Shown: positions 2,646 through 28,707, numbered from the whole stretch's first letter. The stretch: 62,972 nt of DNA, filler included, from Reticulomyxa filosa (GCA_000512085.1; 15 parts of 15 records of this genome joined end to end with filler, not necessarily neighbours in it); one strand, 5' to 3'. Notes: generated by a model from the letters alone, not told the origin. Translations and numbers: made by a program.

Positions 2646-3682
2646 GTTTAACAATTAAATCAAGGGGATAAATTAACTAAAGCAAACAACAAAAAAACTT
2701 TAGAAAAAAACTACAGTACACTGCCGTCTTACGTTGTTTTACTCAAAAAAGACCTTAACAAAAATTATTTAAGCTATAATTTACCAAAAATGTTTGAACT
2801 ATGTAGCGGCAGTATCATGATACATCTTCTGTCAAATAAATATAAACAAGTTATCTGTTCCAGTTTATTTGTAACTTGTGTTCTATATTTCAAACTTAAT
2901 ATCGTGTCAAAGACGTGCTGATTGCTGTTTGCAGTCTTTGTCTTAATTTTTAAAACCTTCTTCAACACTGCTTAGCAAAGAATGTTTACTTTGCTAATGA
3001 AAATATGACATAGTGAGCTGAAAAGATAGCAATGCTTTCCTTCTTCTATTTATCGAGATACTTCTGCCCCGATCGTGTGCTTCTAGATCAAAAGTGTTAT
3101 CGTTGGAATGAGTGTTAATTGAAAAATTACAATACAAATTTTGATCTTTAAAAAGCAACAAAAAAATTTAATTCAATAGTATTAAAAAGCAAATACAACT
3201 GGAAAAAAAGAAATAAACAAAAAAAAATTAGGTTTAAATGTTTATTTTTTATGGGGAAATCGATAATCTTCATGAGTAGGCATTTTATGTGTTCAGTTTT
3301 TTCTGTTGTTTAGCGGGTATATCTATTCTGCTCGTTTTCAGAAAAAGAAAAAAGGTGTATGAGTTTTAATAAATGAAACAATTTTTTCATAATTCTGTGA
3401 AACAAAAATAAGTCAAAAATTAAATATTTTTGAAATGTTGATTTTTCATGAAATTTTTATTATTTAAATTTCACAAGTTTTTTGAGATTCGTGTACAATA
3501 TTGGTATGTGTTTTTTTTTGCACATTTGAAGCCAGGATATCATCACGATCGTTTCGAAGGATTGAATTCAACCAAGACAAATATACTGAGGTTTGCAAGG
3601 TACTTAAAAATGGAACCTTATTAAAGAAATGGAAAAGGTAAAAAAAGAAAAAAGTACTGTTTGCAAAAGATGGAAAAGACTC

Positions 3683-4975
3683 TCAGGTGGTAGTACAAAT
3701 CGAGTGAAAAGGCCGAATGAATGGTGGATGATGATGAAGAACACGGATAATTGGCGGAAGTGAACCGAATAACATGCCTTCGAATTGTAGTATTTGATCA
3801 CATTCAAAGCATTTAATTTCAAATAAATCATGATAAGACCATAGCAAACACGATATAGCATGGATCGACAACAAAGTGCGATGAACACCTTTTTTGGCAA
3901 TAGTGTCGTTATAACACCATTTGATGCACCAATTCTGAATGAAATCAATGTTATCTGTTTCCATAAATTCGGCATGGCTAGCATTCAATTGTTCAACAAA
4001 CGTTTCAAAATGTTGATTTAATTTGTCAAACACTCTGCTTTTATTTGATAGTTTGTTTACTTTTTTTTCGATATGCATTTCTGATTCAGATTCTAATTCT
4101 AAATCAGCCCTTTCCAAGTTTTGGTCCTTCATTTCTGCTTTCACTTTTTTTCCACTTTCCTCAGAATCCTTTCCCATTTGTGTTTGTATTTCTGTCTTGC
4201 TTTCAGTATTTTCTATTTCTTGGCATTCCTCTTCTTCACGTCCAAAAGCAAAGATACTTTTGATAAGAGAAAGATTTTTATGGTTGGAATCATTGTGTTT
4301 TTTTTTGTTGATATTCTTAATTAAATCAAAGAGATTATTCAAATGAACAATTACTGTGAATTCTTTGCAATTCTTTTTTCCAATGGAATATTTCAATTGG
4401 GTTATCTGAGATGCTTTTGTTGTTATTTTATATTTGCATTCTAAAAATAGGTTTTGATTCAGTGCATTTAATTCAATACTATAATTTTGTAGATCTTTGT
4501 TACTGAGAAGGTTGATTTTTTTTATTATTATTTCCTGTTATCAGACTATTCAGCTCATTTCTATATTATCAATGTGTACATATATATTGATAATTGGAAT
4601 GTCTTTATTTTTTTATGAATTGTGACAAACTTTGGGAAAAATGAATGAACAAATTGTAGTGGCTTTGGTGCTTTCCATAATGTTGCTGAAGATGACACAC
4701 TCTGACGATTGGATATCACGTTTGTTGTTAACAATAATTTAATTTTATCCATATGTTTTTTTGTTTGTTTATAATGCTTTGACATAGTGTCTATCACTTC
4801 GACATAATCCAATCCTTCTTTTGGTGTACTTTCACTTGTTTCTTGTCTTTTGTCACTACTATTGCTACTTCTTCCGAAACTTTCAAATAATTTTTCTACC
4901 TCTTTTCTCGCTGCTCGCACCTTTGTTTTTTCCCCATCGTTCCTTTTGTGTCAGCTTTTTTTGTAAGTTGTTCAT
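3683..4975 (-). CDS. MED27: Mediator complex subunit 27 homolog (multi-exon, two apparent 1-nt frameshifts in homopolymers)
   Basis: The C-terminus LWSYHDLFEIKCFECDQILQ...LPPIIR...PFHSIC matches the Med27 Zn motif (SY..LF..PC..C...L....LPP.WR.....FH..C). SRVFDKLNQH and the N-terminal VRAARKEVEKLF also fit. Joining the ORFs needs intron(s) plus frameshifts near 4930 and 4520. Confidence 0.75.
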
Positions 4976-5490: not shown

Positions 5491-6969
5491 ATGCTAAACT
5501 TAGGGGATAGTTTGACATCACCCATTTCCTCGCCTCAGTGTTTGTCGTCTCCTTCAAGCGCGGAAGAAGAGCCTGCCAAACTAAAAGACGTGGACAATTC
5601 ATTGTCCAATAGTCCAAGACATCGGAGTACTATAACTCCATTGATACCGTCAGAAATGCTTGACATTGCAACATGCACTACACCGCCTGGGATTAAACCA
5701 GCCATTCCCCATCCACAAACACTACATAAGATGCTGCAAACGGTGCCATTAAGTTCACATGAAAATGGGCAACTACCTCCCTTTCCAATGTCGCCTCATT
5801 CAAAACAAACACCAGAAAGTCTTTTGCCAGTTGTAACCAAAAATTTGCAAGATGAAAAATTGAAGATAAAGAGAAAGCCCTTTTCTATCATTCGATTAGA
5901 ATCAAATACAAGTAGCACCCCCACACCATTATCCATGAAGCCGGTAACAATCCCATTGTTTGGTAGTGATGACGAGCGCCCTTCAAGACGACGCCACACG
6001 AATGCGATCAATAGAACCAAGTTTCTCTTTCGAAATGCCACCGATTCAAAGAATATTTTTCGTCGAGCAAAACATAGTGCTCACGATATTAATGACACTA
6101 AAAAACTCCTTTGGCAAATTATAGACATTCGTGGCATGCAGCCAATCAAAAAGAAAGCTTTTAATAAAAACGCAGAACTGGGGAAATATGATGAAAAAAA
6201 AGATGATAAATGGGAAAAACCAACAAGTTGTTGGTTTCGTTGCCAATATCAAAAAGCTTTGGTATTGACAGCGTGTGATGTACTGGAGCATTACTTTCAT
6301 CCCATTGATCCCAGGCTGTGAAGCATAATTGCTTTGGTGCTTATGTGTATGGAAGTCATGTTATATTATTTGTAAACTTTCAAGAGTCTTCATTTGTCAA
6401 CAGTAGTGCTTTAAGTGGTTTATCTTCTGTTCGATTTATTCACCATTTGGCCAGACAAGAGTTTCCGAATGGAGCTGAGTCAGCTTCCTTGTTTGATTGG
6501 GACAATTGCTACACGCACTTTGAATGGTTCGATTCTGTTTGCTATTTTTATTTTGAAAAAATAAGTGATGTTTTTATTTAATAGTGTGACGACCAAGGCA
6601 TTAGACATAGCAAAATGTCTAACCTACTTGGATGCAATCAACCATTTAAATCGAAGAAATGATGAAAAAATGAACTCTCCAAATGAATGGGAAAGCTACA
6701 AAGGGACACTAATTCGCTTGCAGCATCACGAAAGCAATGATCACGTATCTATATCTTCACCTACACAAAACGATTGCTATTATACTTTTCTTCCTTTACA
6801 TGAAATTATCAAAACCAAGACCAAGCATGGTGGTAATGAATTGGTTCACAAAATCATCACTGAACCACGGGCTAATCGTACATGGAACTATTTGATCCAA
6901 AGCAGAGGTGAATACCATAATAAACGCAAAGGATATCTTTCTTTACCAAAAGCAATTGTTACAAACTGA
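5491..6969 (+). CDS. Hypothetical protein, Ser/Pro-rich N-terminus, about 3 exons
   Basis: Three consecutive ORFs (5491-6321, 6318-6581, 6565-6969) can be joined by short AT-rich GT-AG introns. No family recognised. Confidence 0.65.
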
Positions 6970-7507
6970 TGAATATGGATTTTTGCTTATCCAAAAAAAG
7001 AGTGTTATGGACAGTTTTTTTAGTTTTTGGTTGGTTGTTTTAGTTGAGATTAGTTAATTTATTTTAAAAATAATATATATTGTTTTATATATTGTTTTTA
7101 TAATTTACTATCGTAAATATATTTGAAACGGTCAATACGACGCAACCAAAGAAATTCATGGAATCCTGTTTTTCAACGTTATTGCATTGTGAAAATCTGC
7201 ACAGAGATTTTTTGTAATGACAGTGCCGTTAGTCATCACTTAAGAAAGGAAAGTAAGGTTTACAAGTGTACACATTCTACTCAACAACAAATTTAAAAAA
7301 ACACTGAAAAAAGTTAAAAAATGTCACAGTGCACTCGATTTGTCGGTGCAAAGCAAAGAAAGGAAGGAAAACCAAACAACTTTTTATTTAAGAATGGTGA
7401 GACGGCACGTTTCCAGATATTTGCGAATGGAAAGTGTTTGAAAAGTTAGGCCTACAGAAAAATCAATAGGCAAACTAAGAATTGGCTTGATTGTTTGTGT
7501 ACCGTTG

Positions 7508-10500
7508 TTAAGGCATTGTAATTTTTCCCTCTTCCACGAGACGTTTATATCGATCTGATGTCATAAACTCCGGGAAGACGCGTGATATGAGATCCGATTT
7601 TACTTCTTGCCTGGCTTTATCCAATAAATCTTCTGGCAACAAATCACTCTTCTTTGTTTGAACAAAGCTTTTCATTGCTTCATGCCGTGTAGTTCCTTGG
7701 ATAGTTTCCAAAAACTTTGGACTTTCAGGCTGTAATCAAAACGTATCCAGTTATTTGTATTTCCAAACTAAAAAAAAAAAGACAACTGACCAAGAAAAAA
7801 GTTTCGATGATCAATTTTGCGTTGTCTCGTTGCGATCTAGGATTACAGGCGGGATCCTTGCAAAAAATTTTGTACTGATTTGCCATTAAATAGAATTCGA
7901 GCAACTTGTAGTCACCACTTTTCCTATAGTAGTTTGAACACGTAATTGTCTACTATCATTCAAAAATTAGAGAAAGAAAAGTTGGAACTAACTTTTTTAA
8001 GTATTTCAGTAATACGCGAAGCAAGTTGGTATCTTCCAAAAACGTGGACAAATCTCCAACAGGGACACTGTCAGCACCAGATTGCGCCTTTGCTGGTGCA
8101 ACATTATTGCTTGACGACGCAGGAACAGGTTTTATTTGCTTGTTGGCAATCGTACCGTCAGTATTGAGCATACCACTCCCAGACACAGCCTCTTTTTCTC
8201 CTTCACTTCCAGTTTCGACTTGTTGTGGCCTGGCAACTCTCGAATCACGTCCACTTAGATCCGCCGGGGGAATGAAAATATCTGTTTCATTTTCATCACC
8301 TTTCGTTAGCTCTACCACTTCACGTTTTGAATTCTCTTTGACAACGTTTGACTTGTCACTTTGTGGATCAAGAGATTTGGACTCTCTACGGTTTTGCGCC
8401 CTTGATTTTAAATCCTGAGCGCTTCCATTAAGTGAAGTCTTACTTGTACCAACCGCAGATTCTCGTTTTTGTTGAATAAGTATCTGTTCTCGAAATTGTC
8501 GATTTGCACTAGGCATAATTCCACCTTGTTCCAGAACATCACTTTCTTTGTAAGAGGCAATTCGAATAATAGGCCCTTGATTTTCGGTTTCATTTGAAAT
8601 ATTTCTAAGCCTACTGTTATCTTTTTGAATCGTTGCATTTTCTTTTTTTTCTTCTTTTTGTTCTTTCGCCTCTTCTTCTTCCTCTTCCTCCTCTTCTTCT
8701 TCGTTATTGCGTTCTTCGGAGTCTTCGTATTCGAGGTCGTTCTGTTCTTTCAGTTTTTGCAATTGTGCACCGCCTAATGTATGGACTCGTGAATGAGTAC
8801 CGTCATTTCCTCCAACTCCTGCAATCTTTTTCATTACTTCTTCTATTTTTTTTTTTTTTTTTTTTGATATTGTTAAATGTTTTGGTTGCTTGTATGTGTG
8901 TAGTAGGAAAATAACCTTTGTATTGTTTTTCGGTAGTTTCGTCTTTTTTATCCGGTACATTATTTTGGGATGACTTGTCCTTTTCTGGCAATTTTTTATC
9001 GCCACTGACGTTGGCCAAAACATTGCTCTCGCTGAGCACGACTTGAAGACGACCGCCGTCCTCAACATTATCATCCATGTCCGACACATTGCTGCTTTGC
9101 ATTTGATGCAAAATGGGTTTCAGCATTTGGTCTTTCGATGCCTCTCTTTGTATTGGTACGCTTTGTGATGGAGATTTCTGTGGACTAGACACAGATCGTT
9201 GCAACTTCAGGTTGTTTTCAGCAGAAGCGGCTTCGCTGCGTGCGTCTTTGGGCTCCATCATTAACAAACGATGTAACTGTGCGGCACATCAAACACAAAA
9301 TAAAAGATCGAGTCATGAGATTGGACACAAAGAGAAGGAAAAAAAAATCCTTTTCCTTTCCAAAATGGACCGAACTTTGGGATCGATCTTCATATCGTCT
9401 GGATACTTGGCAATTATTTTTGTTGCTTTTTCCAAAATTTGTGACAAGTTAGACAGTGTTGAAGACATGCCGTCTTCAAACAAATCATGTTCGTGTTTGA
9501 AGGGTGGGTACAAGTTGCTTTGCTGAAGTCGGACCGAACACAAACACAAAAGCCGATTCAAGAGACATAAAAGAAGCACATGTGATGATAAAAAAAGGTA
9601 AAATAAAAACATACCATAACACGTGACTTGTGTGCTGTAGCTTTGTATTCATTTTTGGTTAATAGCAACACAAACTCATGTGCTGCTTGTGCCACCGTTT
9701 CATTATCACAAGATGTAAGAGCCACACACTTTGCAAATGTGTCATCAAAGCACTATAGTTGTGTAATACATACATTTGCATTTTTTGTGGTTTTCAATTT
9801 TTTTTTTAATAAATAAAAACCAAACTGAAATTACTTCTTGAAATACACTTAATTGCTTGCATTGCTTTAGCAATCGCGGAACAAACAACTGAAGAGCTTG
9901 GATGCATCCCAATTTTTGCAAGTTGTCACCAATGTCCAAACAAATTGCAAACACTCGAGCCAAAGTAGCGGCTTGTGAGGGTATAAACAAATCGATTAAT
10001 GCTTGACAAAAGTCCCCCAACGCGTGATGGATCGATGGCTCTTCAGATGTCAAGCATGCTTTCAATGTGTTGGCAATATGAGTGATGACATCGTAAATCT
10101 ACATTTCAAAAGAAAATAATTTTTGTATTGCTTTTATTTTATTTGTTCGCTCTATCCTCCAAAAAAAATTTTAAAAAGTAGGATCAAAGTAACTGAAACA
10201 TAAATAGATCTGAAATTACTATCAATTTTGGACCAACTGGGCACTGGATATTTGGACAAATGATCCTGGTTATCAAAATCGATGGTTCCTAAATTGACAT
10301 TTTCTTCTACAATGTTTTGCTGCAGATATAATGCTAATAATGTGAACATTCGTGCATTCTTTTCTCTCAATTTCTTTCCAACTTCGGCTCGCCTTCATTC
10401 GTAAGCGTGTGTATATGTTAGATATAAGTATATGTTTTCATTTACACACGTGCGGAAGAATATGCATGCACAGAACTTTCTTAAAATTTCAGCCCTTTCA

Positions 10501-13500
10501 ATGGGATCAACGGTGTCCAGTTCGTCTTGGTCATCATCCTCAGAGGCTTCAATATGCAACAAATCGTTGGGGTTTTTGCCATCGACAGATACTCCATTTC
10601 TGTCCACATATTTGGTATTGTGGCTGTCTTTGAACCCGGCAATGTGGTGTCCTAATTGGTCCATTGAAAAGTACTGAGGATGCAGCACAGCACAAGCGTA
10701 TGGAAGGAAGAAGGCGATGTTTGCAGGCACACGCGAATGCACATTACGATCGTGTAACACGTCACAGCGCACCAGCCAACAGCAGGTCAATATCATCATC
10801 GCATCCACAGACAAAGGAACTGGGGAAGACTCTCCGATCGAATATGTCAAAGAGGAAAGCAGCCGTTCTTGAATGCCTTGGAAATTGGGTTGTAATGTTT
10901 TGTACAAGTCCCAAAACATTGTCAATGATCCACTGTCTTTGCGGATACGCGTGCCATCTGCGTTTTTGGCATGTTGGAAGAGCCATGTGATCCATTCTTT
11001 ATGGGCCATTACATGATACAGTAACTATTTTTCCAATATTCAAACGTGCCGTCGTGTCAACATTTTTTTTTTTTTTTTTTAAAAAAAAAAATAGACGCAA
11101 CTCTTCTTGAAGCAATCTGTACTGATGCGGCTCGACACTGCAACAACGATAAGGCAACCCAAAAGATGACCAGGATAACACGGAACAGTGATTTGGACCA
11201 TTCTTTCTTTGTTTGTACAATGATCGTCAACGTTTCAATGGCACGGACGGCCAGTAACAAATCGTTGTCGGCTCGCATGTACCTTTGTTCAGGAGGTTGG
11301 GAGCTCCAAAATGTTTCGCTGGCCTTTAATCCACGGATAATTGTTTGCAAAATCATAGTGACGACTTTCAAAGTCAAAGGCTCGGCGACAATGCAATATA
11401 AGCGTAATGCTCGACTGGCAATTTGTCGTGCTTTGAACACGGTGCCGTGATCGGACAAGTCAACTTCGACAGTGGCCCATTGCAAACAGCGCATTCCCCA
11501 TGCCGTGGCAGCTTCTTTCGATCCATATCGTAGTTTAAAACACGCGTACATCAATCGACTCAAATCGTCGACGTAAAGCGTAGTCTTTCTTGCGAACCAT
11601 CTTTGCAAATTCAAACGCGTGCCTCCATTTGCAGTGAATATAAGTTCGACTTCTCGGTTTATCTCTTCGGTCGTCCAAGGCTCCGAATCTGTGATAGGCT
11701 GTTCATTCCATTGGAATTGATACGTGCGACGATCTCGCAGCCACATTGCCAATTGAATGACTTCATCATCCACACTAATACGTGGAGGTATCAAGGCCAC
11801 AAACAAATGGGAGAGCAATTCTGCGTTTGGATTTGCCAATTGCTCCATCGGCTTTGCAAGGAACAGCAGCGAGTGAGTCATTATCAATGGCAACGCGCAG
11901 CGAATGCGTTGGATATCTGCACGCACATATTATCAAGTAAGTAATATAGTTTATTGTATCGATATGTGTACTCATTGTTTTAATCGACATATCCAAAAAA
12001 CAACAAAAAAAAAAAAAAAACAAAACTTCGAATAATAAGTGAGGAAACCCATCGTATGACCACCTCGGTCACTAAATGAGCATATTGTCCTCCGCCCAAC
12101 TGCAATGAACTATCGACGTACTCGTTCTGATCTTCTCGGACAATCTGCACATGATCCGGATTCGGCAGCACCCGACCACCCAATCCACAGCCGACATTGA
12201 GTATTTGCAACAGACTCGACAACACGGATTCGGGATGGGTGACAAATATTTGTCGCAAAATGTTTTCGCACATCAGAATGAATTGTTCCGGCGTCAACAG
12301 ACCTCGACGCATGTCTGCGATGTGGGCCAGACTGGGACGTGTTACGCCTCCCGTGTCTCTTGTTTGGTCCAATTCTCGCGAGGATTTGCTCTTGGCGACC
12401 ACATTGAACAACGACTTGGATTTGTGTCGGGTTTGTAATAGCAGTTCGTCTTGCAAGGCTTGCTTGGCTGTCGCTTCCATGTTTGCAATCTCTTTCATAT
12501 CTTGTTGATAGCCCTCGTATCGACCAATGACAGTGCGAATCAAAAACCGCACGGCATCGTCGATGTTCTTGGGCTCGGGATGGGACATCAATGTGGTGTT
12601 GTTCGTCAACACTGCGTGCCAAATGCGATGGAACTGCGTGTCGATTTCCGGTCTTCGTTCGTGTCCGAATCTCAGCGTCAAATTGAGCAATCGTTCCATG
12701 TACAACCCGATGTTGCTGGAACTGTGCAAAGGAGCATTCGCAAACCATGGCAACGCGATTTGCAGCAGATTGTGGACCAAAGTCAAGTGGTTATCTTGCA
12801 CAATCGGCGACAAAGCCTCTTGTTGTTCTAAATCGTTCATTCTTGTCGCCATTTCTTCCAATATCTGCAACACGTGGTGGACAATGGCATGCGAAGTTTC
12901 ACTCGATGCCGCATTCGCAAATAAAATGGAGATTTGCATTGCCGTGTGTCTCACATCGCGGATATCCAAGGACTGCAAGCCCATTCGAAGTTCGAACAAC
13001 TGGTCCAAGGGCTCATCAGAATGACATAGCTTTTTGGCCAATTTGTAGAGCAGCGCAAATGCGCGACGACTCATATTTATCGCATGCATAATGTCGTCCG
13101 CCACTCGAACAGCGATAATCGATTCCGTCCGAGAATAGCCCCCGTCTTGCATGTCCGGATCCGCTTTCTTGTTGGAAGATGCCAAGGCTATTCCCTGGGC
13201 AATCAATGTCGGTGAAAGCAGTTTCGGACGCGAAATGTGTTGACTTCCTTCCTCCTCCGCGTATGCCACGGCTTGCTGCATGTCTTGAGTGGATAGACTC
13301 ACGGGCAAAGACAAGGAATAAATGGACCCGTAATTATCGGATGGAATGCCTCGCAGAGTGACCAAGGAGGACGCATCTCTTTGATGTTGCGCAATGTTCT
13401 TGCCGTTCAGAATTACCTGTCGATCGACAAATGGGATTAGAAACATTAAACAAAACACAGCGAGTTGTTTGTGGATATCATTTGCATTCGCGTCAACATC

Positions 13501-16500
13501 ATCATTGACAATTGCATTGCCATTGCCATTGCCATTGCCATTGCTCATTGACATTGACGTGACCTGCCTTGGCATCATCCAGATTCGAGTCGGGCACATC
13601 CAAAGAGACAATAACATCGAAAAATATTTTGGCATGTCCATAGCCACCTCGAGCCAATTCAGAATAGAACATATGCAAAATGGACTGGAGCACGGTGGTG
13701 TAGTAATGCTTCATCAAATACTTGAGCGAGGGGATGCCTTCTTTTTGTCCGTCGATTGCCCATTGCAACCACGAAGAGCGATGTGCTTCGTTGTCTCCGT
13801 CCTTTGGCAAAATGCCATCTTGTTGAGGCGACAACACCGGACCCAATGCCAACACCGAAGTCGCTGTGCGAAATGCTTGATATTCCAATTGCAATATGCG
13901 CAATCGCAATTGTCTTTCTTGCACTTGGTCAGCCGCTTTATCACGTAGCACTGCGCGTTTATCCCATATACTCGAAACCAGCTGTTTGCCTTCAGGGTCC
14001 TGTCCGCTGCTGCACTGCGACCATATTTTCATCATTTTCAACACGCGCGCTCTTTGTTGGGCGTCCCACAGCTGTTGCATCCATTCCATGTTCTCTGCGG
14101 CTGCGATGGTCGACATGGCCATTCGCAAGGCAAAGGCCACGTTTTCGACTATTCGAGCGATGCAACGGAATCTCTCTGGATCTCCATTGCAATGTTCCAA
14201 CAAATGCTTGTCGTCCAAATCACAACAGAATTGGATGAGTTCTTTGTGTATTCCATCGAGTTTGATTTGATCTTTGCTATTTTCTTTCTCCTTTTCCTTT
14301 TGCTTGTCTTTCTCTTCCTCTTCGTCCTCCTCTTCTTCCTCTTCTTTCTGTTTCTTATTTTTATTCTTATTCTTCTTCTCTTCGACTTGGATTGGGGCCA
14401 ACTCTCGTTCCATCATTCGGATCAGTCTTTCTTTCGAACTGAAGGCCAACACCACGTAGTTGTATATCCACACTCGTCGACAATTGGAATAGAACATTTG
14501 CATTGCTTTCTTTTTTTTTATTCGGCCTTTTGGATGTTGATAGTTGGCTTCGTACCATGCACGCAGCGACTTGAACAGCGGTACCAATCGATTGGAGTGA
14601 GCGCATTGAAGAGTATATAAAATGGTGTTGATGAGTTGAGTGTCGTTGTCATTTGCAAATCGCCAAAATTGAATCCAAATGCTATTGTAAAACTCGACTT
14701 CATTCAATCCATTGTCCTCACTGAATCCGAGTAATGGGATCAATGCTATGCACATACTGCCGAGGACGTCTCTCTCCATTGACTTTTCATCCACACCCAA
14801 CCATTTTTCTTGCAGCAGTATTTCTTGACAGCAATCCACTCGCAAAAATTTCATGTATTCACTGCCCTGTTCGCACAGCGCTTCCATTTTCTCCACAATG
14901 ACATCCATGCACGCGCTATACGGGGTGAAGTCATTTGGGTCGAGCAATGCTCTCCACACTCCATGTGTCGGACTATATCCGCCTGCGTTATTACGATTAT
15001 TGTTATTGGCATTGCTGCCATTGGCTTTGTTGTTATTGTTATTGTCATTGTTTGTGTTGATATTACTAATGCTGGTATAATAGGTCTCCATCTTGTTCGG
15101 TTCAAACTCGCTTGTGGTCAGTTTAATATTGTCTTGATGATTTTTGAATTTGACCGCGGCTCGATACACCATTTCGTCCGAGTACAATTCCAACATTTGT
15201 CCAATTGAAGATGGAAACGACAGTTGTTTTTGTTGCTCCAGTGGTGACTTGTCCACGTAGTAATATCCAATCAACAGTTCCATGGCCTTTTGTACAGACT
15301 GGAGCAGTTCCACACTGGAATGTCGAATGTAAATGTTCGTGTGACACAAAAACGCAAAGGCCAGGGCGTCCAATCGATGCAGTGCCACACACAAGGTTTC
15401 CACTGTTTGTTTCTGATTCACCACTTCCACACGTTTCTTATTCGTCAGATTCACAAACACCATGACTAATTCTACACTTTCCATCCCACACATACACGCA
15501 TGTATACACGCATGTATACATTATGCACATATATATGCAACACAAACAAAATATTTTATCACAAAATGCATTCCAACAACAAGCATTGCAAAACTGGACA
15601 GAGCTTGAATCAATACACTAATGCAAAAAGCTTCGTGGATAAAGAATTGCAAAATGAAGTTGGTTAATTCGGTCAACAGCCGAGGCAACAATATTCTTTT
15701 ACAAGTGTCAATGATTATATCAAAATATACCAATTTTTGCCAACACAAAAAATAAAACAAAGCAAAAAACAAATAAAATGAAATGAAACAAAAGTGAAAC
15801 TTTTCTTGCTTTGCCACTTCAATCAACACGCAAAGAGCGAGTTGCGCAATCTCGTAATCTGGGTGCAACAATAAATATCCAATGTAAAGTTTATTCCCTT
15901 GTTTGGCGTCGGTAAGGATCGACGAAGGACGCAATGCCAATGAGGCACGCAAACACGCTTTTAAGACTTGTAGATATTCTTTACGACTAGTCGCCTTTGC
16001 TTTCTTGACCATTTCTTCCAATGTGTCGAAATCATTGATTTTCTGTCTGGCGTTTAAAACGAATTTGGCAATGCTATTGTTATGTATAAATGCAAGTTTC
16101 AATAAGTCTTGGTTTGTCAGTGATGCATAAGCAGGATGGTGTATAATGGCATCGTCTTGTTTTTTGTCTTCCATGATTTCGTCCACCACACTTTTTTTTT
16201 CTTCTTCGGGGTCGTTTCTGTAGTTCCACCACAGAGAAGAGGCATCATCGCCATCGCCGTCTTGAAACAAGGGCAGTCGATGAAGAGATGGTGATTTCAC
16301 CCGAGTGATGTCAATGGATTCGGGCTTGTCTTTATCTTTATCCAAGCGATAATGAGTTGGTGATACCATCGGTACAGAAGGAGACGAGGTGGATGGAGTC
16401 ACGGTAGTAACGACGTCGCTAAATACCAAAGGTTGTGTGCGTCGACCAATTTTTTCCACGCCAATGAATTGCTCCGCTTGCCACAATATGGTCGGCAAAA

Positions 16501-18926
16501 AATCATTGAGGGTTGACAACAAAGTCGGACTCGGTTGGTGTTGACGAACGAAATTGCCGTCCAATCGCACAATTTCGCTGACGCAGTCCAAGCCCAATAC
16601 AATTTGATCGACTGTCGATTTTCGAACATCAAACAGCTGTGGCAACAGCGTTTGAACCGCGAGTTCCAAGTTTTGGGCGCACAAATGCACAAACACGCAC
16701 ACACATCGATGCCAGTGTCGATGGTACATCGTCTTCAGCGCCTTGCCACGCAAAAAGGCCTTAAACACTACGTGCATATGATTTTTCTTGGCGTTTTCAT
16801 CGTCGTCACTACGTACACTGCTGAGCCAATTGATGGGTCTTTTTTCGTGAAATGGAAAGGGGTTGTTTGTTCCCTCGAAAAGCATTTGCAGCATTTCCAA
16901 TGCGTCTCCGACCTTGTCAGCTTCATCCAAGTGATTCAACACGTGATTTTCCAAAAAGGGTTGAAGCTTTTCGTACATCGAAGTCGGCCCACGCAATATG
17001 ATTGTCAACATTAATAAGTAGCATGCCTTTTTCACGGGACGACCTTTGCCCGAAGTTGATAACTTTCTTACAATTTCAAAGATCTCGTTGAGTACCTTTA
17101 TTTCGTTGGTCTTACGTCCGACAAAATCCATTTGCTTCGCTACATTCAATATCGTTTGCAAATGCGCAATCAACACCTCCTGCGACGTTCGTCGATTCGC
17201 CACTTTCAGATACTCTGCGTGGAAGGTCAGCCAATTCTCTTGGTTGTTCTTGTCCACACGTATGTAACGTAGCATTGCAAAGTACACGGCCGCTTTTCCC
17301 GACATTTGCTGTTTCTCCACACATTCTTCCAACTGACTCTTCAACATCGTTTGAACCTATTTTTTTGTCATTGCAAATTTAATAATGTGCCTTTGGCATC
17401 AATCAATTTCGAGACATTGCAAGCAAGAAAAAGAATGAAAAGCCTTCATAATGGATATGCCAAAGCGAGATTTGCTTAACTTGGGATGAGTGCTCTGTTG
17501 CAGAGACAAGACCAACTATTTTGGCCCATTCCATTGTTGATCGATTTCCATATTCTTCTAGTAGCTTCAATTATCACACACAAGTTAGGGACATATGATC
17601 GAATCGACCAACAAAATAAAATACATATATATATATAAACATATATGTATGTATATGTACATATATGTATGTATATGTGTATATGTATATGTGTATATGT
17701 ATATAGTGTCGTATGTGTGCATTGATTTGGCCCCCAATGGCAAGTAAATACACACAAACAGGAGATTCGTGTTTTCGTTGTGTGGCTCTGTCAATATTAA
17801 ATTTGACGACGTCCATTAACCATTGAACAGTAAGTTCGTCAATCTTCAATATATACACACGTTCTTGATTGGAGATATTATATTGTTTTTTCTCATCGTC
17901 CTCTTCTTCATGTTTATGATTTACCGCCTCACTTTGTTCCATTTTTCTATGTGTCGAAGATCGTATAAAGATCGTTTATATATACATATATGTATATACA
18001 TGCATATACAATATCATGGAGGTGATCATTTATAAACACAAAAAAAAGAATATTTTGTTTAACGATAATATACGAAGAAGCATTCTCGACACGACAAAGT
18101 CGATGATAGGTTCACACATTTCGGCAGTTTTTTTGGACGAATTGTCGTCATTTTTTACAGCAAATTTATTATCATTTTCCACACTGTCACGCTTTTCATT
18201 ATTGCTTTTACCATTCTCATTTTTGCTTTCTGAGCCTCGTTTGTCCTTATTTTTGTCCTCGACATCTCCGGACTTATAGCTTTGATGCTTTTCTGCTACA
18301 TTGCGCACTGGTTCTACACTTCCTCGAAAGATTGGAGCTTGAGGATATTTTTCTTCTATTGCACCAATTACATTGCGGAACGCACTTAATTCACGGACCA
18401 CTCCCTTTTGTTGTCGTTGTTTGTTACTTCGGTTACTACTGCTTTCTTTCATTTCTACACACTAACCACCTTCCTACGGCGGATAGTGCAGTACACTTAA
18501 AAATAAAAAAATATGCTTCGCCATTTTTAAAAAAATTCAATGCAAAAAAAAAAACTTTTGCTTTATTCGGATATGGCAATAGTTCCAACAGCCCTTCGAC
18601 CAAATTTTGGGCAGATTCATTTCGATGTATTTCAGCTTCAAAATTTTTGGCAAAGTTATCAAAAAATGCTCGGTCTGGTAAAAATACGTGCCCTTGGAGA
18701 GCAGTATCCTTTTGATATACCAAATCTGATGTCCAGTTTTTCACGAGTGCATGTAAAAAGTTGCTGAACAAAGTCGTAACATGGTCATTATTTTGCATAG
18801 CAACTTAGACAATAATTTAAAGAAAATAGATTTAACGGGGTCTTTTAAAAAAACTTCGTACTTTCGTAACACTATCCTGTTTGATACATTAAATATTAGA
18901 CTTAAAAAAAATAATCTGTAAACCAT
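7508..18926 (-). CDS. FRY: Furry/Tao3/Mor2-family cell morphogenesis scaffold with a C-terminal RGS-homology domain (many exons; start tentative)
   Basis: Furry-family blocks occur in the expected order: IIDFVVSRMLLRIL; MLRYIRV; LDALAFAFLCHTNIYIRHSSVELLQSV; ALPWFAN; LLNLTLRFG..IWHAV..KNIDDAVRFLI; LPLIMTH; WGMRCLQWAT..IASRALRLY; IFWVALSLL. The 3' exons encode an RGS fold: LSTFLED..LLKYL..LLEFY..AKLIIETFF..LLDKARQEV..VFPEFMTSDRY. Confidence 0.85.
17622..17720. repeat. Intronic (TA)/(TG)/(CA) microsatellites
   Basis: Imperfect dinucleotide runs; similar runs at ~20220-20275, 21147-21200 and 42178-42305. Confidence 0.85.
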
Positions 18927-24892: not shown

Positions 24893-26546
24893 TTAATTTT
24901 GTTGATAGGCAGAACGCACGATATCTAACAAAATATCATCATTGTCCATCAAAATATTTTGCTCAACATCGTCTTGTTCATTTCTATCTTTTAAAATAAG
25001 CATTTGTCCATTTTGTAAGAGTGTTGCCAATTCATCTTGAAATTTTTTATGAACAATTTGAAACTCCATCACCGTCTTGGGCTTCTCTTTTTTCCAAAAT
25101 TCGTTGAACAAGACGAAATAAGAGCCTTTTTTTTTCCCCCCCCCCCCCCCCACCGCACAAAGACATTTTTTTTTTGTTAAAATGAAGGAAAAGAATATAT
25201 AGCAAAACAAAAACAAAAAAAACGCAACTGAAAAATTGGAAAACAACAGACAATCTCAATTCATCGATATGGTGGCATTGAAACCCAAATGCTTGTTCAA
25301 ACTCGTCAGCATAAGAGGATGTATCTTCACGCTTGTCGCGACGCGGAGAGGTTTGACTTTGTTGTTGCAGTAGGGCGTTTGTCTGTAAATATTGGTACCG
25401 TTTCAAAAATATGCCGTCATGACTTGTCGCAATATGTTGTAGAAACCATTGACAAACAAGTCGATTGTGATCATTCCAGCAAGGTAAGGGCGTTGTTTTT
25501 TTAGCATTAATAAAATCATTGATACTACACCCAACAAATAATTGATACGTCGCAAATGTGAAATTGATTCCAGTGATAAAATAAGAAAACCAATCATTTG
25601 AACGATCGTGTGCAAGAGTGTCGTATAAAATACGTTGGTTATATTTTTCATACTTTTCACCAAACCACAACACTGCGTTCAGACTCAATAGATCCAGTCC
25701 ACGAAAATCGGATCGAGGTGTTTTTCCTTGAAATCCTATCAACTGCCATCGACTATCACTTTGGAGATTTATCTTTCTTCCATTTTTGTTCCATTTGTTT
25801 TCATATCTTCCAATTGTTTGTTCCCACAGCTTTGTTCATAACAATTACATTTTGATGACGAAGCCAATCAATTCAATAAAAACGCATTCAAAACAATAAT
25901 AAAAAAAAAAGAGGCGAAAACATTAAAAAAGAGTACAATATTCAAAAACGAATCGGAACTAGTTTTTTTTTCAAAAAAAAAAAAAAGGAGAGAGAACTTG
26001 TTCGAGCAGTTTTTGATTGCCCTCGTTTTTGTGGTCAAATCTTTGTAGCGAAATTTCGTTCAAATCACGAGTAATTTCATTCCAACTACTCAAACACAAC
26101 AGGCATTGACGTAGGTTCTCAAGAGATTCACGAGATGACCAAGACTTGATGTTTTTGATTTTTACAATGGCTGATATCTCAGATTCAATGTCCAAGTCTG
26201 GTGTTCGAATTAGCTTTTCGTATGTTGTTCGATATGGCCGGCTTCGTTTTAGATATGAAAGCAACTTCCAAACCATTGGAGCACTAAAAGAGCCTTTACT
26301 TAGGATGCGTTCAATTTCGTGAGTCCCACTTATCCATCGCACTATGTTTCAAACATTTCAATTGAAAGCTTATTTGTCTGCTTGTGGCTGATGCCTCTGC
26401 TTGCTCAAAATTTGTTTGTTTATTTTCTTTGTTTTTCTTCAGACAACTGAACGGAATACTTTGAATATACGAAAAAGCAAGAGAAACCATACAAAAGAAA
26501 ATAATTTATTGAGAATTTGCTCAAATTTTTCTGCTATACCAGCCAT
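24893..26546 (-). CDS. ELMO/CED-12 domain protein (ELMOD-type Arf/Arl GAP), multi-exon
   Basis: The signature WQLIGFQGKTPRSDFRG includes the catalytic Arg. FSYFITGINFT and FNEFWKKEKPKTVMEF are present, and the N-terminal RWISGTHEIERI resembles ELMOD1/2. Confidence 0.9.
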
Positions 26547-26743: not shown

Positions 26744-28707
26744 ATGGAACATATATCTCACGAACATTTTAAATCAGTTGGTAGGTACGGCACATAATTT
26801 TGTAATGCACTCTTATTTTTGTTTTTTCAGCAGCTCAGCCAGTAAGAGTGCAACAACAAATTGAAACTGTAATTGTTAACGGGACGGGAAAACAACAGTG
26901 AAAATATTTGTCGTAAAGTGTGAGCCAAACTATACGAATCCATGGCAAATGTCTCACCAGACGAAGTCGAACTATAGTGGTTTTATTATAACAAACAACT
27001 ATATTATGTGCACAGCACATGCAGTAGCATTTGCAAAAAGCATACGGTGCGTTATAACAACAAACAACGCACATGTATATGTAACTTTCTCCCCTCCCCA
27101 CGTGATATACACAATTCTGTGGCGTATGCGTATGTGGTATTATCATCGACTTGAATATAAGAAATAGATAGAACAAAACCCACAACGTATACGCTCTTTA
27201 CGCTCACGCGCAAAAAAAAAAAAAAAAAAAATGGAACGTTGTGTAAAAAAAAAAAAAATTAAAAAAATGAATGTGATAGGATTCGCAAGCACAACGACAG
27301 AAGTGGTAAGAAATATGCAGCTCGTGTGGCACATGTCGGACACGTGTGCGACCTAGCACTGTTGGAAATCGAAGACGAGGCGAACAGCGGAACGACAAGT
27401 GAAAAGTTTTGGAGCAACACAACTCCGTTGATCTTTAGTGAGGTACTGCCCAGTTTGCAAGCGACAGCATTTGCATTGGGATACCCTGCGGGCGGAGATA
27501 CCATTTGTGTGACGAAAGGAGTAATAAGTCGGGTGGGGCTCATCAAGTACTTCCATAGTTCTCGAAGCTTGCCCACTATCCAATTTGACGCGGCAATCAA
27601 CGAAGGAAGTTCCGGGGGGCCCGTCATGCAAAAAGATCATGTCATTGGGATGTGTCTCCAAGCATTGGAAGACAAACAAAACATTGGGTTCTATTTTTTT
27701 TTACTTTTTAAAAAAAATAATAAAATAAACCCTTTTTTTTTAAAAAAAAAATAATAAATAGGTATTGTGTTCCATCAGTGGTGATCAACCACTTTTTAAC
27801 GGATTGTTTTGTACATAAGAGAGTGGCGAATTTTCCAAAGTTAGGATTTTCGTTTATAAATTTGGAGAACCCCTCTCATAAGAAGCAGCTTGGTCTGAGC
27901 GATGAACAAACGGGTGTGTTGATACGATCGCTGACGCCGTTGACAGACGCGAAAAAAAAACTGGAGGTAGGCGATGTGCTGTTAGAGTACGATGGTGTTG
28001 TAATTGCGGATGACGGGACCATTCCGAATTTGCTTCGCGACAAAAAGGACGACATTGGAGAGCGCGTGGAATTTACGGTGTTGGCGTCTCTCAAATTCAA
28101 ACACGAAAAATGTCGATTAAAAATTTGGAGAAATCAACAAATGCAATGGATTGATGTCAACGTCTTCGCGTCCTCTAGTCTGCTGGTCCCGTTGCATTTG
28201 TATTATCTCAGCGATAACGAGATGCGCGAACACAAACAACGCTACGAGGAAGGCCTACTTCGAAGTCGTCACGCAAGGGATATCACGCCGAGCGTCGAAC
28301 AAGAAGAAGAAGAGAAGCAATTACACCAAAAGCAATTACGTGCGCCATTGCAACAGCAGTTTTTGCAACCACAGGCTGCCACTCAGTCCTCGCCACAAAT
28401 CAATGCTAACACTAGCACCACTCTTACTACTGCCACTGCTATTGCCACTACTACAAATATAGCGGCGACAACAACGGCAATATCGAGTGAAACGACTACT
28501 TCAAATGCAAATGCAAATATAAATGCAAATGCAAATGTAAGTGCAAATGCAAATGCAATAGCATCAACAACAACCACAGTGACGATAACAGCTGTGGGTA
28601 CAACAGATTCGACTATCAATGCTAATGCTATCTCCAACAATAATACTAACACGACGACAAATGCAAATGCAAATGCAAATGCAAATGCAAATGCAAATGC
28701 AAATGCA
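26744..28707 (+). CDS. Deg/HtrA trypsin-like serine protease with PDZ domain (Deg2/9/10-like); 3' end truncated by a gap
   Basis: VKIF..PNYTNPWQ is present. The triad is TAHAV (His), CDLALL (Asp) and DAAINEGSSGGP (Ser). GYPAGGDTICVTKGVISR and the PDZ region LENP..GVLI..GDVLL..IADDGT follow. Confidence 0.93.
28500..28707 (+). repeat. (AATGCA)n hexamer arrays encoding Asn-Ala repeats
   Basis: A perfect run at 28660-28707 ends the contig; an imperfect run lies at ~28502-28560. Confidence 0.9.

Follow-up and report, generated by a model that had tools for sequence, protein, structure and literature searches.

The RGS-homology (RH) domain of Axin binds APC rather than G-alpha, and the RH domains of GRK2, the RhoGEFs, SNX13/14/25 and D-AKAP2 serve as binding modules and not as catalytic GTPase-activating proteins (GAPs). 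In protists with RGS expansions, RGS domains are known to be promiscuously fused and shuffled. We know of no report of a C-terminal RH domain in any Furry protein. Here, we describe a gene of the naked foraminifer Reticulomyxa filosa that may carry precisely this combination. It lies on the minus strand of R. filosa contig C21653, at positions 7508 to 18798 of a 62,972-nucleotide stretch of joined assembly parts, filler included (hereafter, the window; its coordinates are used throughout). The interpretation that we somewhat favour is that this one gene would encode a protein of ~3,230 residues, composed of a divergent Furry-like scaffold, a disordered linker and a C-terminal RH docking domain.

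The gene model is built on comparative sequence evidence. The assembly searched comprised 102 Mb in 50,809 contigs, and the searches were run either exon by exon or with natural intron-poor homologues; exons were joined only for frame and stop bookkeeping and for junction peptides. Splice sites were chosen by scoring candidate junction peptides (~20-25 residues) against translations of the intron-poor homologues. For the first four junctions, an equal phase and a similar peptide were demanded in the R. filosa paralogue on contig C24088. The features of the gene are as follows.

7508..18798, minus strand: whole gene, from frame bookkeeping; colinear with C24088 in tblastx
18556..18798, minus strand: exon 1, with ATG at 18798-18796 (MQNN...); donor picked by junction-peptide match to C24088
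18404-18064, 17946-17760, 17564-17481 and 17356-15600, minus strand: exons 2-5, N-terminal scaffold; phase and peptide match to C24088
15476-13616 and 13563-12027, minus strand: exons 6-7, central scaffold; 58-70% amino acid identity to paralogues
11916-11102, 11024-10477 and 10392-10194, minus strand: exons 8-10, C-terminal scaffold; introns picked against intron-poor homologues
10098-9826, 9752-9615 and 9522-9376, minus strand: exons 11-13, C-terminal scaffold, ending ...KIDPK; introns picked against intron-poor homologues
9375-9277, minus strand: intron 13, 99 nt, phase 0; decides between one gene and two
8070..9276, minus strand: linker, made of exon 14 (9276-8916) and most of exon 15 (8842-7993); open frame in every copy
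8915-8843, minus strand: intron between exons 14 and 15, 73 nt, phase 1; independently derived
7511..8069, minus strand: RGS-homology domain, made of the end of exon 15, exon 16 (7923-7791) and exon 17 (7729-7511); from Pfam, homologue and model
7992-7924, minus strand: intron 15, 69 nt, phase 2; L031, a homologous contig from another sample, reads straight across
7790-7730, minus strand: intron 16, 61 nt, phase 0; L031 reads straight across
7508..7510, minus strand: stop TAA, from the sequence; similarity to C24088 ends here

Every long piece of open reading frame (ORF) from 18.8 kb down to 7.5 kb is on the minus strand. By frame bookkeeping, the 17-exon chain from ATG 18798 to TAA 7508 gives a coding sequence of 9,696 nt (3,231 codons plus the stop), in which all introns are GT-AG and the terminal TAA is the sole stop. 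The continuous exon chain lacking an internal stop that the initial annotation of this stretch had proposed is thus borne out, and the four introns that it listed were all recovered by independent derivation, agreeing within 1 nt. That list was right as far as it went and incomplete, introns 9825-9753 and 9614-9523 being examples of others that are also present. The gene start, which had been placed at 18926, has to be moved: we place it at ATG 18798 because this ATG is conserved in C24088, where it stands at 3514 together with the next codons, and the ORF 18741-18926 shows no conservation. DNA upstream of the ATG is not kept in C24088. Exons 6 and 7 are colinear with the single-ORF homologues P0016 and L031, and the C-terminal scaffold exons 8-13 (9376..11916) share 62-90% identity with the paralogues. 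The least certain splice call of the model is the exon 5/6 junction (intron 15599-15477). It can be added that the introns (e.g., window 17600-17760) are full of (TATACA)/(CATATA)-type microsatellites, and that similar repeats occur in introns of the paralogues and of L031.

Judging from the comparison of copies, the scaffold, the linker and the RGS domain very probably belong to a single fused gene. In tblastn and tblastx searches, window 18833-7499 was fully colinear with C24088 3479-14077, and nothing matched beyond either end; in a protein search of the genome, C24088 proved to hold both the final scaffold exons and the final RGS exon, with order and strand kept. The exon order from scaffold to RGS is identical in C24088, and it is also found in C17350 together with C26077, and in C6959. 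Of these further R. filosa copies, the scaffold is represented in C17350 and the linker plus RGS domain in C26077; C6959 extends from exon 10 to the RGS domain. Four contigs from other samples (L031, L032, L033 and L040) carry homologues with 31-63% identity. L031 (Logan SRR32380747) has a scaffold ORF of 1,593 aa and a second ORF of 462 aa that ends KIDPR; after these come an intron that matches window intron 13 and then one 498-aa ORF, which holds the linker together with the entire RGS domain, free of introns. Scaffold, linker and RGS domain stand in that order in L032. In L033, the scaffold/linker junction ...KPDVRLQRLLKMQPND... lies within one unbroken frame of 766 codons: intron 13 is absent, and no splicing is needed. 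L040 (SRR7648297), whose P0016 is a single ORF of 1,824 aa, has an intron at the site of window intron 8. Overall, the architecture is seen again in at least three further paralogues of R. filosa and in the L031 and L032 contigs of other samples, and the earlier claim that scaffold exons run into an acidic linker and then into an RGS fold has been substantiated by exon continuity, paralogues and homologues alike.

As an observation on L040 itself, the intron at its exon 8/9 site (L040:6291-7582, ~1.3 kb) holds an opposite-strand ORF of 350 aa (6357-7409), possibly a nested gene or mobile element.

The particular RH subtype found here occurs at only four loci among at least 61 RGS matches in the genome, and all four are copies of this gene family. 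The proportion of nonsynonymous differences (pN) is 0.07-0.13 in the RH and scaffold exons (0.08-0.13 for the RGS-homology domain) and 0.27-0.31 in the linker, against a proportion of synonymous differences (pS) of 0.58-0.90. The scaffold, linker and RH domain are all under purifying selection. Taken together, the conserved exon order, the junction, the L031 and L033 ORFs and the selection make a single scaffold-linker-RGS protein by far the simplest reading.

The alternative is that two adjacent genes are present: a scaffold gene ending with TGA at 9313, and a separate linker-RGS gene starting from ATG 9261/9258 (MMEPKD...). In its favour, the public model RFI_25192 (P0001, ETO12189.1, 727 aa) ends precisely at 9313, reading through intron 13, and the Met just past the intron 13 acceptor (..MEPKD) is conserved in all five R. 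filosa copies, so that a separate start is formally possible. Both points weigh against a fused gene. However, the way in which the five copies are conserved around intron 13 is hard to reconcile with two genes. At this site they read ...KIDP[KR]|GT and then AG|L[HNS]RLL[MK]MEPKD, with phase and position kept; conservation halts exactly at the GT and restarts exactly at the AG, and the intron sequences are unalignable. Between copies, the read-through tails agree neither in length nor in sequence, which leaves a putative scaffold gene with no conserved C-terminus or stop, while the codons from the AG to the Met (L-x-R-L-L), which would precede the start of the second gene, are conserved. In L033, moreover, scaffold and linker share one unbroken ORF, and in the window the "intergenic" gap would be only ~50 bp. 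As for RFI_25192, the public R. filosa models in this region retain obvious introns, and the assembly is known for truncated models (PMC5784254). RFI_25192 stops at 9313 only through read-through of intron 13, and we regard two separate genes as very unlikely.

With regard to the public annotation more generally, it covers parts of the gene as separate models, namely RFI_25193 (P0018, 1,143 aa) and RFI_25192; the latter keeps several introns as coding sequence, e.g., ...LSLLQLLQEELRLFFFLKKKKKNVDTTAQWITW... In the public R. filosa annotation, the locus is broken up over two or more models and the scaffold-RGS architecture goes unnoticed. Splice models can be validated with intron-poor homologues taken from unannotated assemblies.

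One irregularity of the fused gene deserves a separate comment. On the minus strand, the frame shifts at ~13615-13540, within an (AATGGC)n/(GTCAAT)n microsatellite, and this is the sole lesion in the whole gene. A 52-nt GT-AG "intron" at 13615-13564, which is used by RFI_25193, mends the frame and drops the conserved VIVSLDVPD. In the paralogues C24088 and C17350, one frame runs straight through the region corresponding to window 13540-13615. Because conserved residues would be removed and the paralogues read through, we doubt the 52-nt intron, and a 1-nt indel, either an assembly error or a real frameshift, appears more likely. The frame change at ~13560 may mean that the window copy is damaged, and this counts against an intact fused gene. 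Taken to its end, such a reading would make the window copy a decaying pseudogene in a multi-copy family, where the presence of several copies makes redundancy possible and where two paralogues read through the very place at which the frame changes here. Yet there is no further stop or frameshift in the 3,231 codons, and pN is far below pS in each exon tested. The lesion, furthermore, sits within a hexanucleotide repeat, a kind of sequence in which indels often arise during assembly, and the canonical 52-nt intron can mend the frame too. We therefore hold decay of the window copy to be highly improbable.

The C-terminal domain of this gene almost certainly adopts a true RGS fold, predicted to consist of nine helices. 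When the window was scanned exon by exon, only exon 17 matched the Pfam RGS model (PF00615), with 22.0 bits (E 2.2e-4), just below the gathering score of 23.9 bits, the domain being spread across three exons. The paralogues gave 29.4 and 27.1 bits, and the intronless domain of L031 gave 42.9 bits (E 7.6e-11, profile positions 2-117 of 117). This L031 domain is 51-66% identical to the RGS exons of the window and the paralogues. It reads ...LKFLKKKTQDYKLLEFY...IIETFFLPDSKKFLEKVQG... directly across both window splice junctions, and window introns 15 and 16 are therefore validated. An AlphaFold2 (AF2) model of the L031 domain reached a pLDDT of 87.9 and a pTM of 0.82. In Foldseek, this model matched RGS8, RGS1, RGS16, RGS4 and the Axin RH domain with a probability of 1.00 (TM up to 0.76/0.89), and against RGS8, RGS1, RGS16 and RGS4 the TM was 0.71-0.89 at a root-mean-square deviation (rmsd) of ~2 A, the matches including chains from G-alpha complexes. 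By sequence, a PDB search with the RGS domain returned only Axin RH domains at E<0.01, the best of them at E 2e-5.

Does such a fold imply action on G-alpha? The canonical R. filosa RGS domains (e.g., C27629, C19748 and C20725) share the Pfam family and the genome with the RH family described here and differ from it in the contact patches. In an alignment, they keep E-N before F-[YW], I-N-I-S and D-S-F-x-R-F, whereas all copies of our RH family have K-L/L-L, E-[TKL]-[IV]-Q and R-V-F-P-[EI]-F instead. We take the replaced positions to be the equivalents of RGS4 E87/N88, N128 and D163/R167, that is, of the three G-alpha contact patches. At these positions, E87/N88 have become K/L, N128 has become T, K or L, thus varying even within this RH family, and D163/R167 have become R plus E or I. 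The domain is accordingly unlikely to be a classical GAP by its sequence, and because each canonical G-alpha contact patch is replaced, we prefer to see in it a docking module rather than a classical GTPase-activating domain.

The opposite view would be that the C-terminal domain is a working GAP, or a direct binder of G-alpha through the canonical surface, and that it links G-protein-coupled receptor signalling to an NDR morphogenesis scaffold. The true RGS fold, which superposes on RGS8/RGS16/RGS4-G-alpha complex structures at an rmsd of ~2 A, agrees with this view, as do the strong purifying selection on the domain and the abundance of possible partners: six-frame searches of the genome yielded at least 145 matches for G-alpha and at least 61 for RGS, many of these lying on short contigs. 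Against it stand the replaced equivalents of the RGS4 contact residues, which are retained in the genome's own canonical RGS domains, and the fact that the best relative among solved structures by sequence is the Axin RH domain. Canonical GAP activity on G-alpha is, in our opinion, unlikely. The direct coupling to heterotrimeric G-protein signalling that the initial annotation put forward thus finds no support here, the canonical contact residues being absent and the closest solved sequence being an Axin RH domain.

A single co-fold of the L031 RH domain with a foraminifer-like G-alpha (P0025), GTP and Mg scored 0.00, that is, it gave "no answer" and speaks neither for nor against binding. No intronless R. 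filosa G-alpha ORF was found among the copies inspected, all of which have introns, and none of the paralogues offered intronless RGS exons, C24088 and C26077 having in-frame introns.

The identity of the scaffold is a more delicate matter than that of the RH domain. The scaffold measures ~2,640 residues and is all-helical, of the HEAT/ARM type; for its N-terminal 608-aa ORF, an all-helical, importin/HEAT-like Atlas model was obtained at low confidence. Two lines of remote-homology evidence point to Furry. First, in an Atlas feature search with the 1,593-aa ORF of L031, MOR2-PAG1 clusters made up seven of the ten best named ones, with scores of 0.92-0.93. Second, R. filosa possesses a separate, Pfam-detectable Furry family (C4544/RFI_05118, C12149, C1408, C9656 and C6774), whose MOR2-PAG1_C matches have E values of 4e-11 to 7e-7, C4544 also having a weak MOR2-PAG1_mid match (E 8e-5). 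Comparison by hhalign with this PF14225/PF14228-bearing family produced three colinear local alignments: one in the N region (P 0.0039), one at the end of "mid" (P 0.0041) and one on the motif FW..x..P.F.G.Q + DR...A.IA.LPY.C at the start of MOR2-PAG1_C (P 0.00048, probability 32%). Controls (reversed, block-shuffled and DOCK) gave P values of 0.11-0.93, and Fisher combination of the three matches gave 1.5e-6. In the window, the last motif is found in exon 9 as FWDLYKTLQPNFQGIQERL...DVLHDRNVHSRVPANIAFFLPYAC, which aligns with the start of the exon bearing MOR2-PAG1_C in the Pfam-detectable Furry genes of R. filosa. The two blocks lie just upstream of the MOR2-PAG1_C match of that family and enter it.

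Several results weigh against such an assignment. The Pfam model MOR2-PAG1_N (PF14222) had no match on the window exons (E<=1), on P0016, which spans the N region (E<=0.1), or on the L031 ORFs at E<=10, the latter beginning downstream of most of the N region; a six-frame genome search with the same model, which was perhaps insensitive, found no match anywhere in the genome. MOR2-PAG1_mid (PF14228) had no match in the window exons, the 1,593-aa and 462-aa ORFs of L031 or P0016, and MOR2-PAG1_C (PF14225) had none in the window or its homologues. The Pfam scans of exons and homologue ORFs returned the RGS domain and none of the three MOR2-PAG1 models, and by the Pfam definition the scaffold is outside the MOR2-PAG1 family. 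When 1.84 billion proteins were searched exhaustively by HMMER with a profile of 428 positions from the exon 8-9 region, 14 matches were found; these were R. filosa models and unnamed environmental ORFs, all belonging to the present family and none of them Furry. Word-indexed homologue searches with the 1,593-aa ORF retrieved only family members, and when pieces and profiles of the scaffold were searched against PDB sequences, nothing rose above noise (EGFR kinase, E ~1) and no Furry relative appeared among the solved structures. A local family hidden Markov model scored a weak 4-7 bits against the Pfam-detectable Furry contigs, and the hhalign probabilities themselves were just 8-32%. Finally, AF2 modelled the scaffold C-terminus (426 aa, from a 14-row alignment) poorly, with a pLDDT of 54.7.

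The fold matches of that C-terminal model were to generic HEAT proteins (Maestro, VAC14) at TM <=0.41, and we set them aside as evidence, although they too fail to favour Furry.

It is, consequently, quite conceivable that the fusion is real and that the scaffold is a HEAT/ARM protein peculiar to foraminifera and unrelated to Furry, its likeness to Furry being that of any alpha-solenoid. The failure of the Pfam MOR2-PAG1 models on window exons and homologue ORFs, an exhaustive search without Furry, a fold search yielding generic HEAT proteins, the presence of Pfam-detectable Furry genes elsewhere in the genome and the Atlas features of the first exon alone, which were mixed among Tra1, neurofibromin and PSME4, all fit this possibility. 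What tells against it is that the longer ORF yields the seven-in-ten majority of MOR2-PAG1 clusters, that the three colinear hhalign matches beat all controls, and that one of them falls on the two-block motif entering the MOR2-PAG1_C match. Weighing these points, we give an unrelated HEAT/ARM origin real but lesser credence and lean slightly towards homology of the scaffold with Furry. The label "Furry/Tao3/Mor2" that had been given to the upstream exons hence holds at the level of language-model neighbours and the three hhalign matches, while Pfam and HMMER lend it none of their support. A Furry-related scaffold of this kind would most likely be a very divergent, lineage-specific paralogue of Furry/Mor2/Tao3, and not the recognisable Furry orthologue of R. 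filosa. None of the Pfam-detectable Furry contigs of R. filosa carries an RGS match. On C4544, a DOCK-family gene (DOCK-C2, TPR_DOCK, DHR-2) follows the Furry-like gene on the same strand.

The acidic linker described earlier is real. It comprises ~380-450 aa, is rich in Ser, Lys and Glu, contains a poly-Glu run and shows 42-51% amino acid identity to the paralogues. It evolves faster than the rest, its pN of 0.27-0.31 still being well below its pS of 0.71-0.79. At 8778..8795 on the minus strand, it reads HSRVHT and then LGG, a putative phosphosite that matches HxRxxS/T, the phosphorylation consensus of NDR/LATS kinases. One Hx[RK]xxT[LF]G site is found in the linker of six out of seven homologues, the site being missing from C6959, and the positions are not alignable. 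It is tempting to suppose that such a site points to regulation by an NDR/LATS-type kinase, which would suit an NDR scaffold of the Furry type, a suggestion that is speculative.

Outside the scaffold-RGS gene, the window holds several other ORFs with domain matches. On the minus strand, these are a class I/II aminotransferase match (1079-2654), a match to the Mediator subunit Med27 (3683-4396) and an ELMO/CED-12 domain match (25047-25742); on the plus strand, the ORF 27778-28704 has a PDZ domain match just under the Pfam cut-off.

How might the fused protein work? We suggest that the RH domain would act as a docking module, tethering the scaffold or its cargo to a partner. The partner could be activated G-alpha bound in effector fashion, as by the RH domain of GRK2 or of the RhoGEFs, or, equally, a non-G-protein ligand, as in Axin; we know of no APC-type ligands in foraminifera. 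The most elaborate version would have a foraminifer-specific Furry paralogue whose RH domain docks an NDR-kinase scaffold on activated G-alpha in effector mode, with the HxRxxT site of the linker letting the NDR kinase feed back. If true, receptor and G-protein signals would be wired directly into the machinery that shapes the branching reticulopodia. We consider this version quite unlikely, and any coupling between G-protein and NDR signalling is speculative.

If made as predicted, the protein would represent an undescribed domain combination, in which a giant alpha-solenoid resembling Furry ends in an RGS-homology domain and which purifying selection has maintained in several copies as well as in related organisms. 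Our literature search found no paper that joins Furry/MOR2-PAG1 with an RGS domain or describes this R. filosa family, in line with the remark in the initial annotation that no RGS-bearing Furry was known. The gene is a candidate for linking surface signalling to the control of cell shape in a naked foraminifer with hugely expanded sets of G-alpha and RGS proteins. The claim has to be tempered: RGS shuffling is common in such protists, the Furry assignment is a remote one, and the RH domain is probably not a GAP.

Finally, we would like to place this gene among the described systems. The Axin RH domain (PDB 1dk8, 1emu, 7y1p) is the closest solved sequence and is among the top Foldseek matches. 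Both domains have LL[DE]F[WY] where the canonical motif is EN[IL]xF[WY], and both are without the Asn that contacts G-alpha. Unlike in Axin, the rest of the R. filosa protein is unrelated, and the fold is nearer to R4-type RGS domains (TM 0.71-0.89, ~2 A) than to Axin (TM 0.60-0.69, ~4.5 A). With GRK2, the p115/PDZ/LARG RhoGEFs, SNX13/14/25 and D-AKAP2, the R. filosa protein shares the attachment of an RGS fold to a large signalling or scaffold protein, and the GRK2 RH domain is among the structural matches of the L031 model. Those proteins, however, are without a Furry-like or giant HEAT scaffold, and the R. filosa RH domain, unlike theirs, stands at the extreme C-terminus, past a disordered linker. 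From the Furry/Tao3/Mor2/Pag1/SAX-2 family of NDR-kinase scaffolds, the R. filosa scaffold is set apart by the failure of all three Pfam models, and it is distinct from RFI_05118, RFI_16323 and RFI_01379, which are without an RGS domain. It nevertheless resembles that family in its size class, with ~2,600 aa of helical repeats, in its mostly MOR2-PAG1 language-model neighbours and in the three weak, colinear profile-profile matches.

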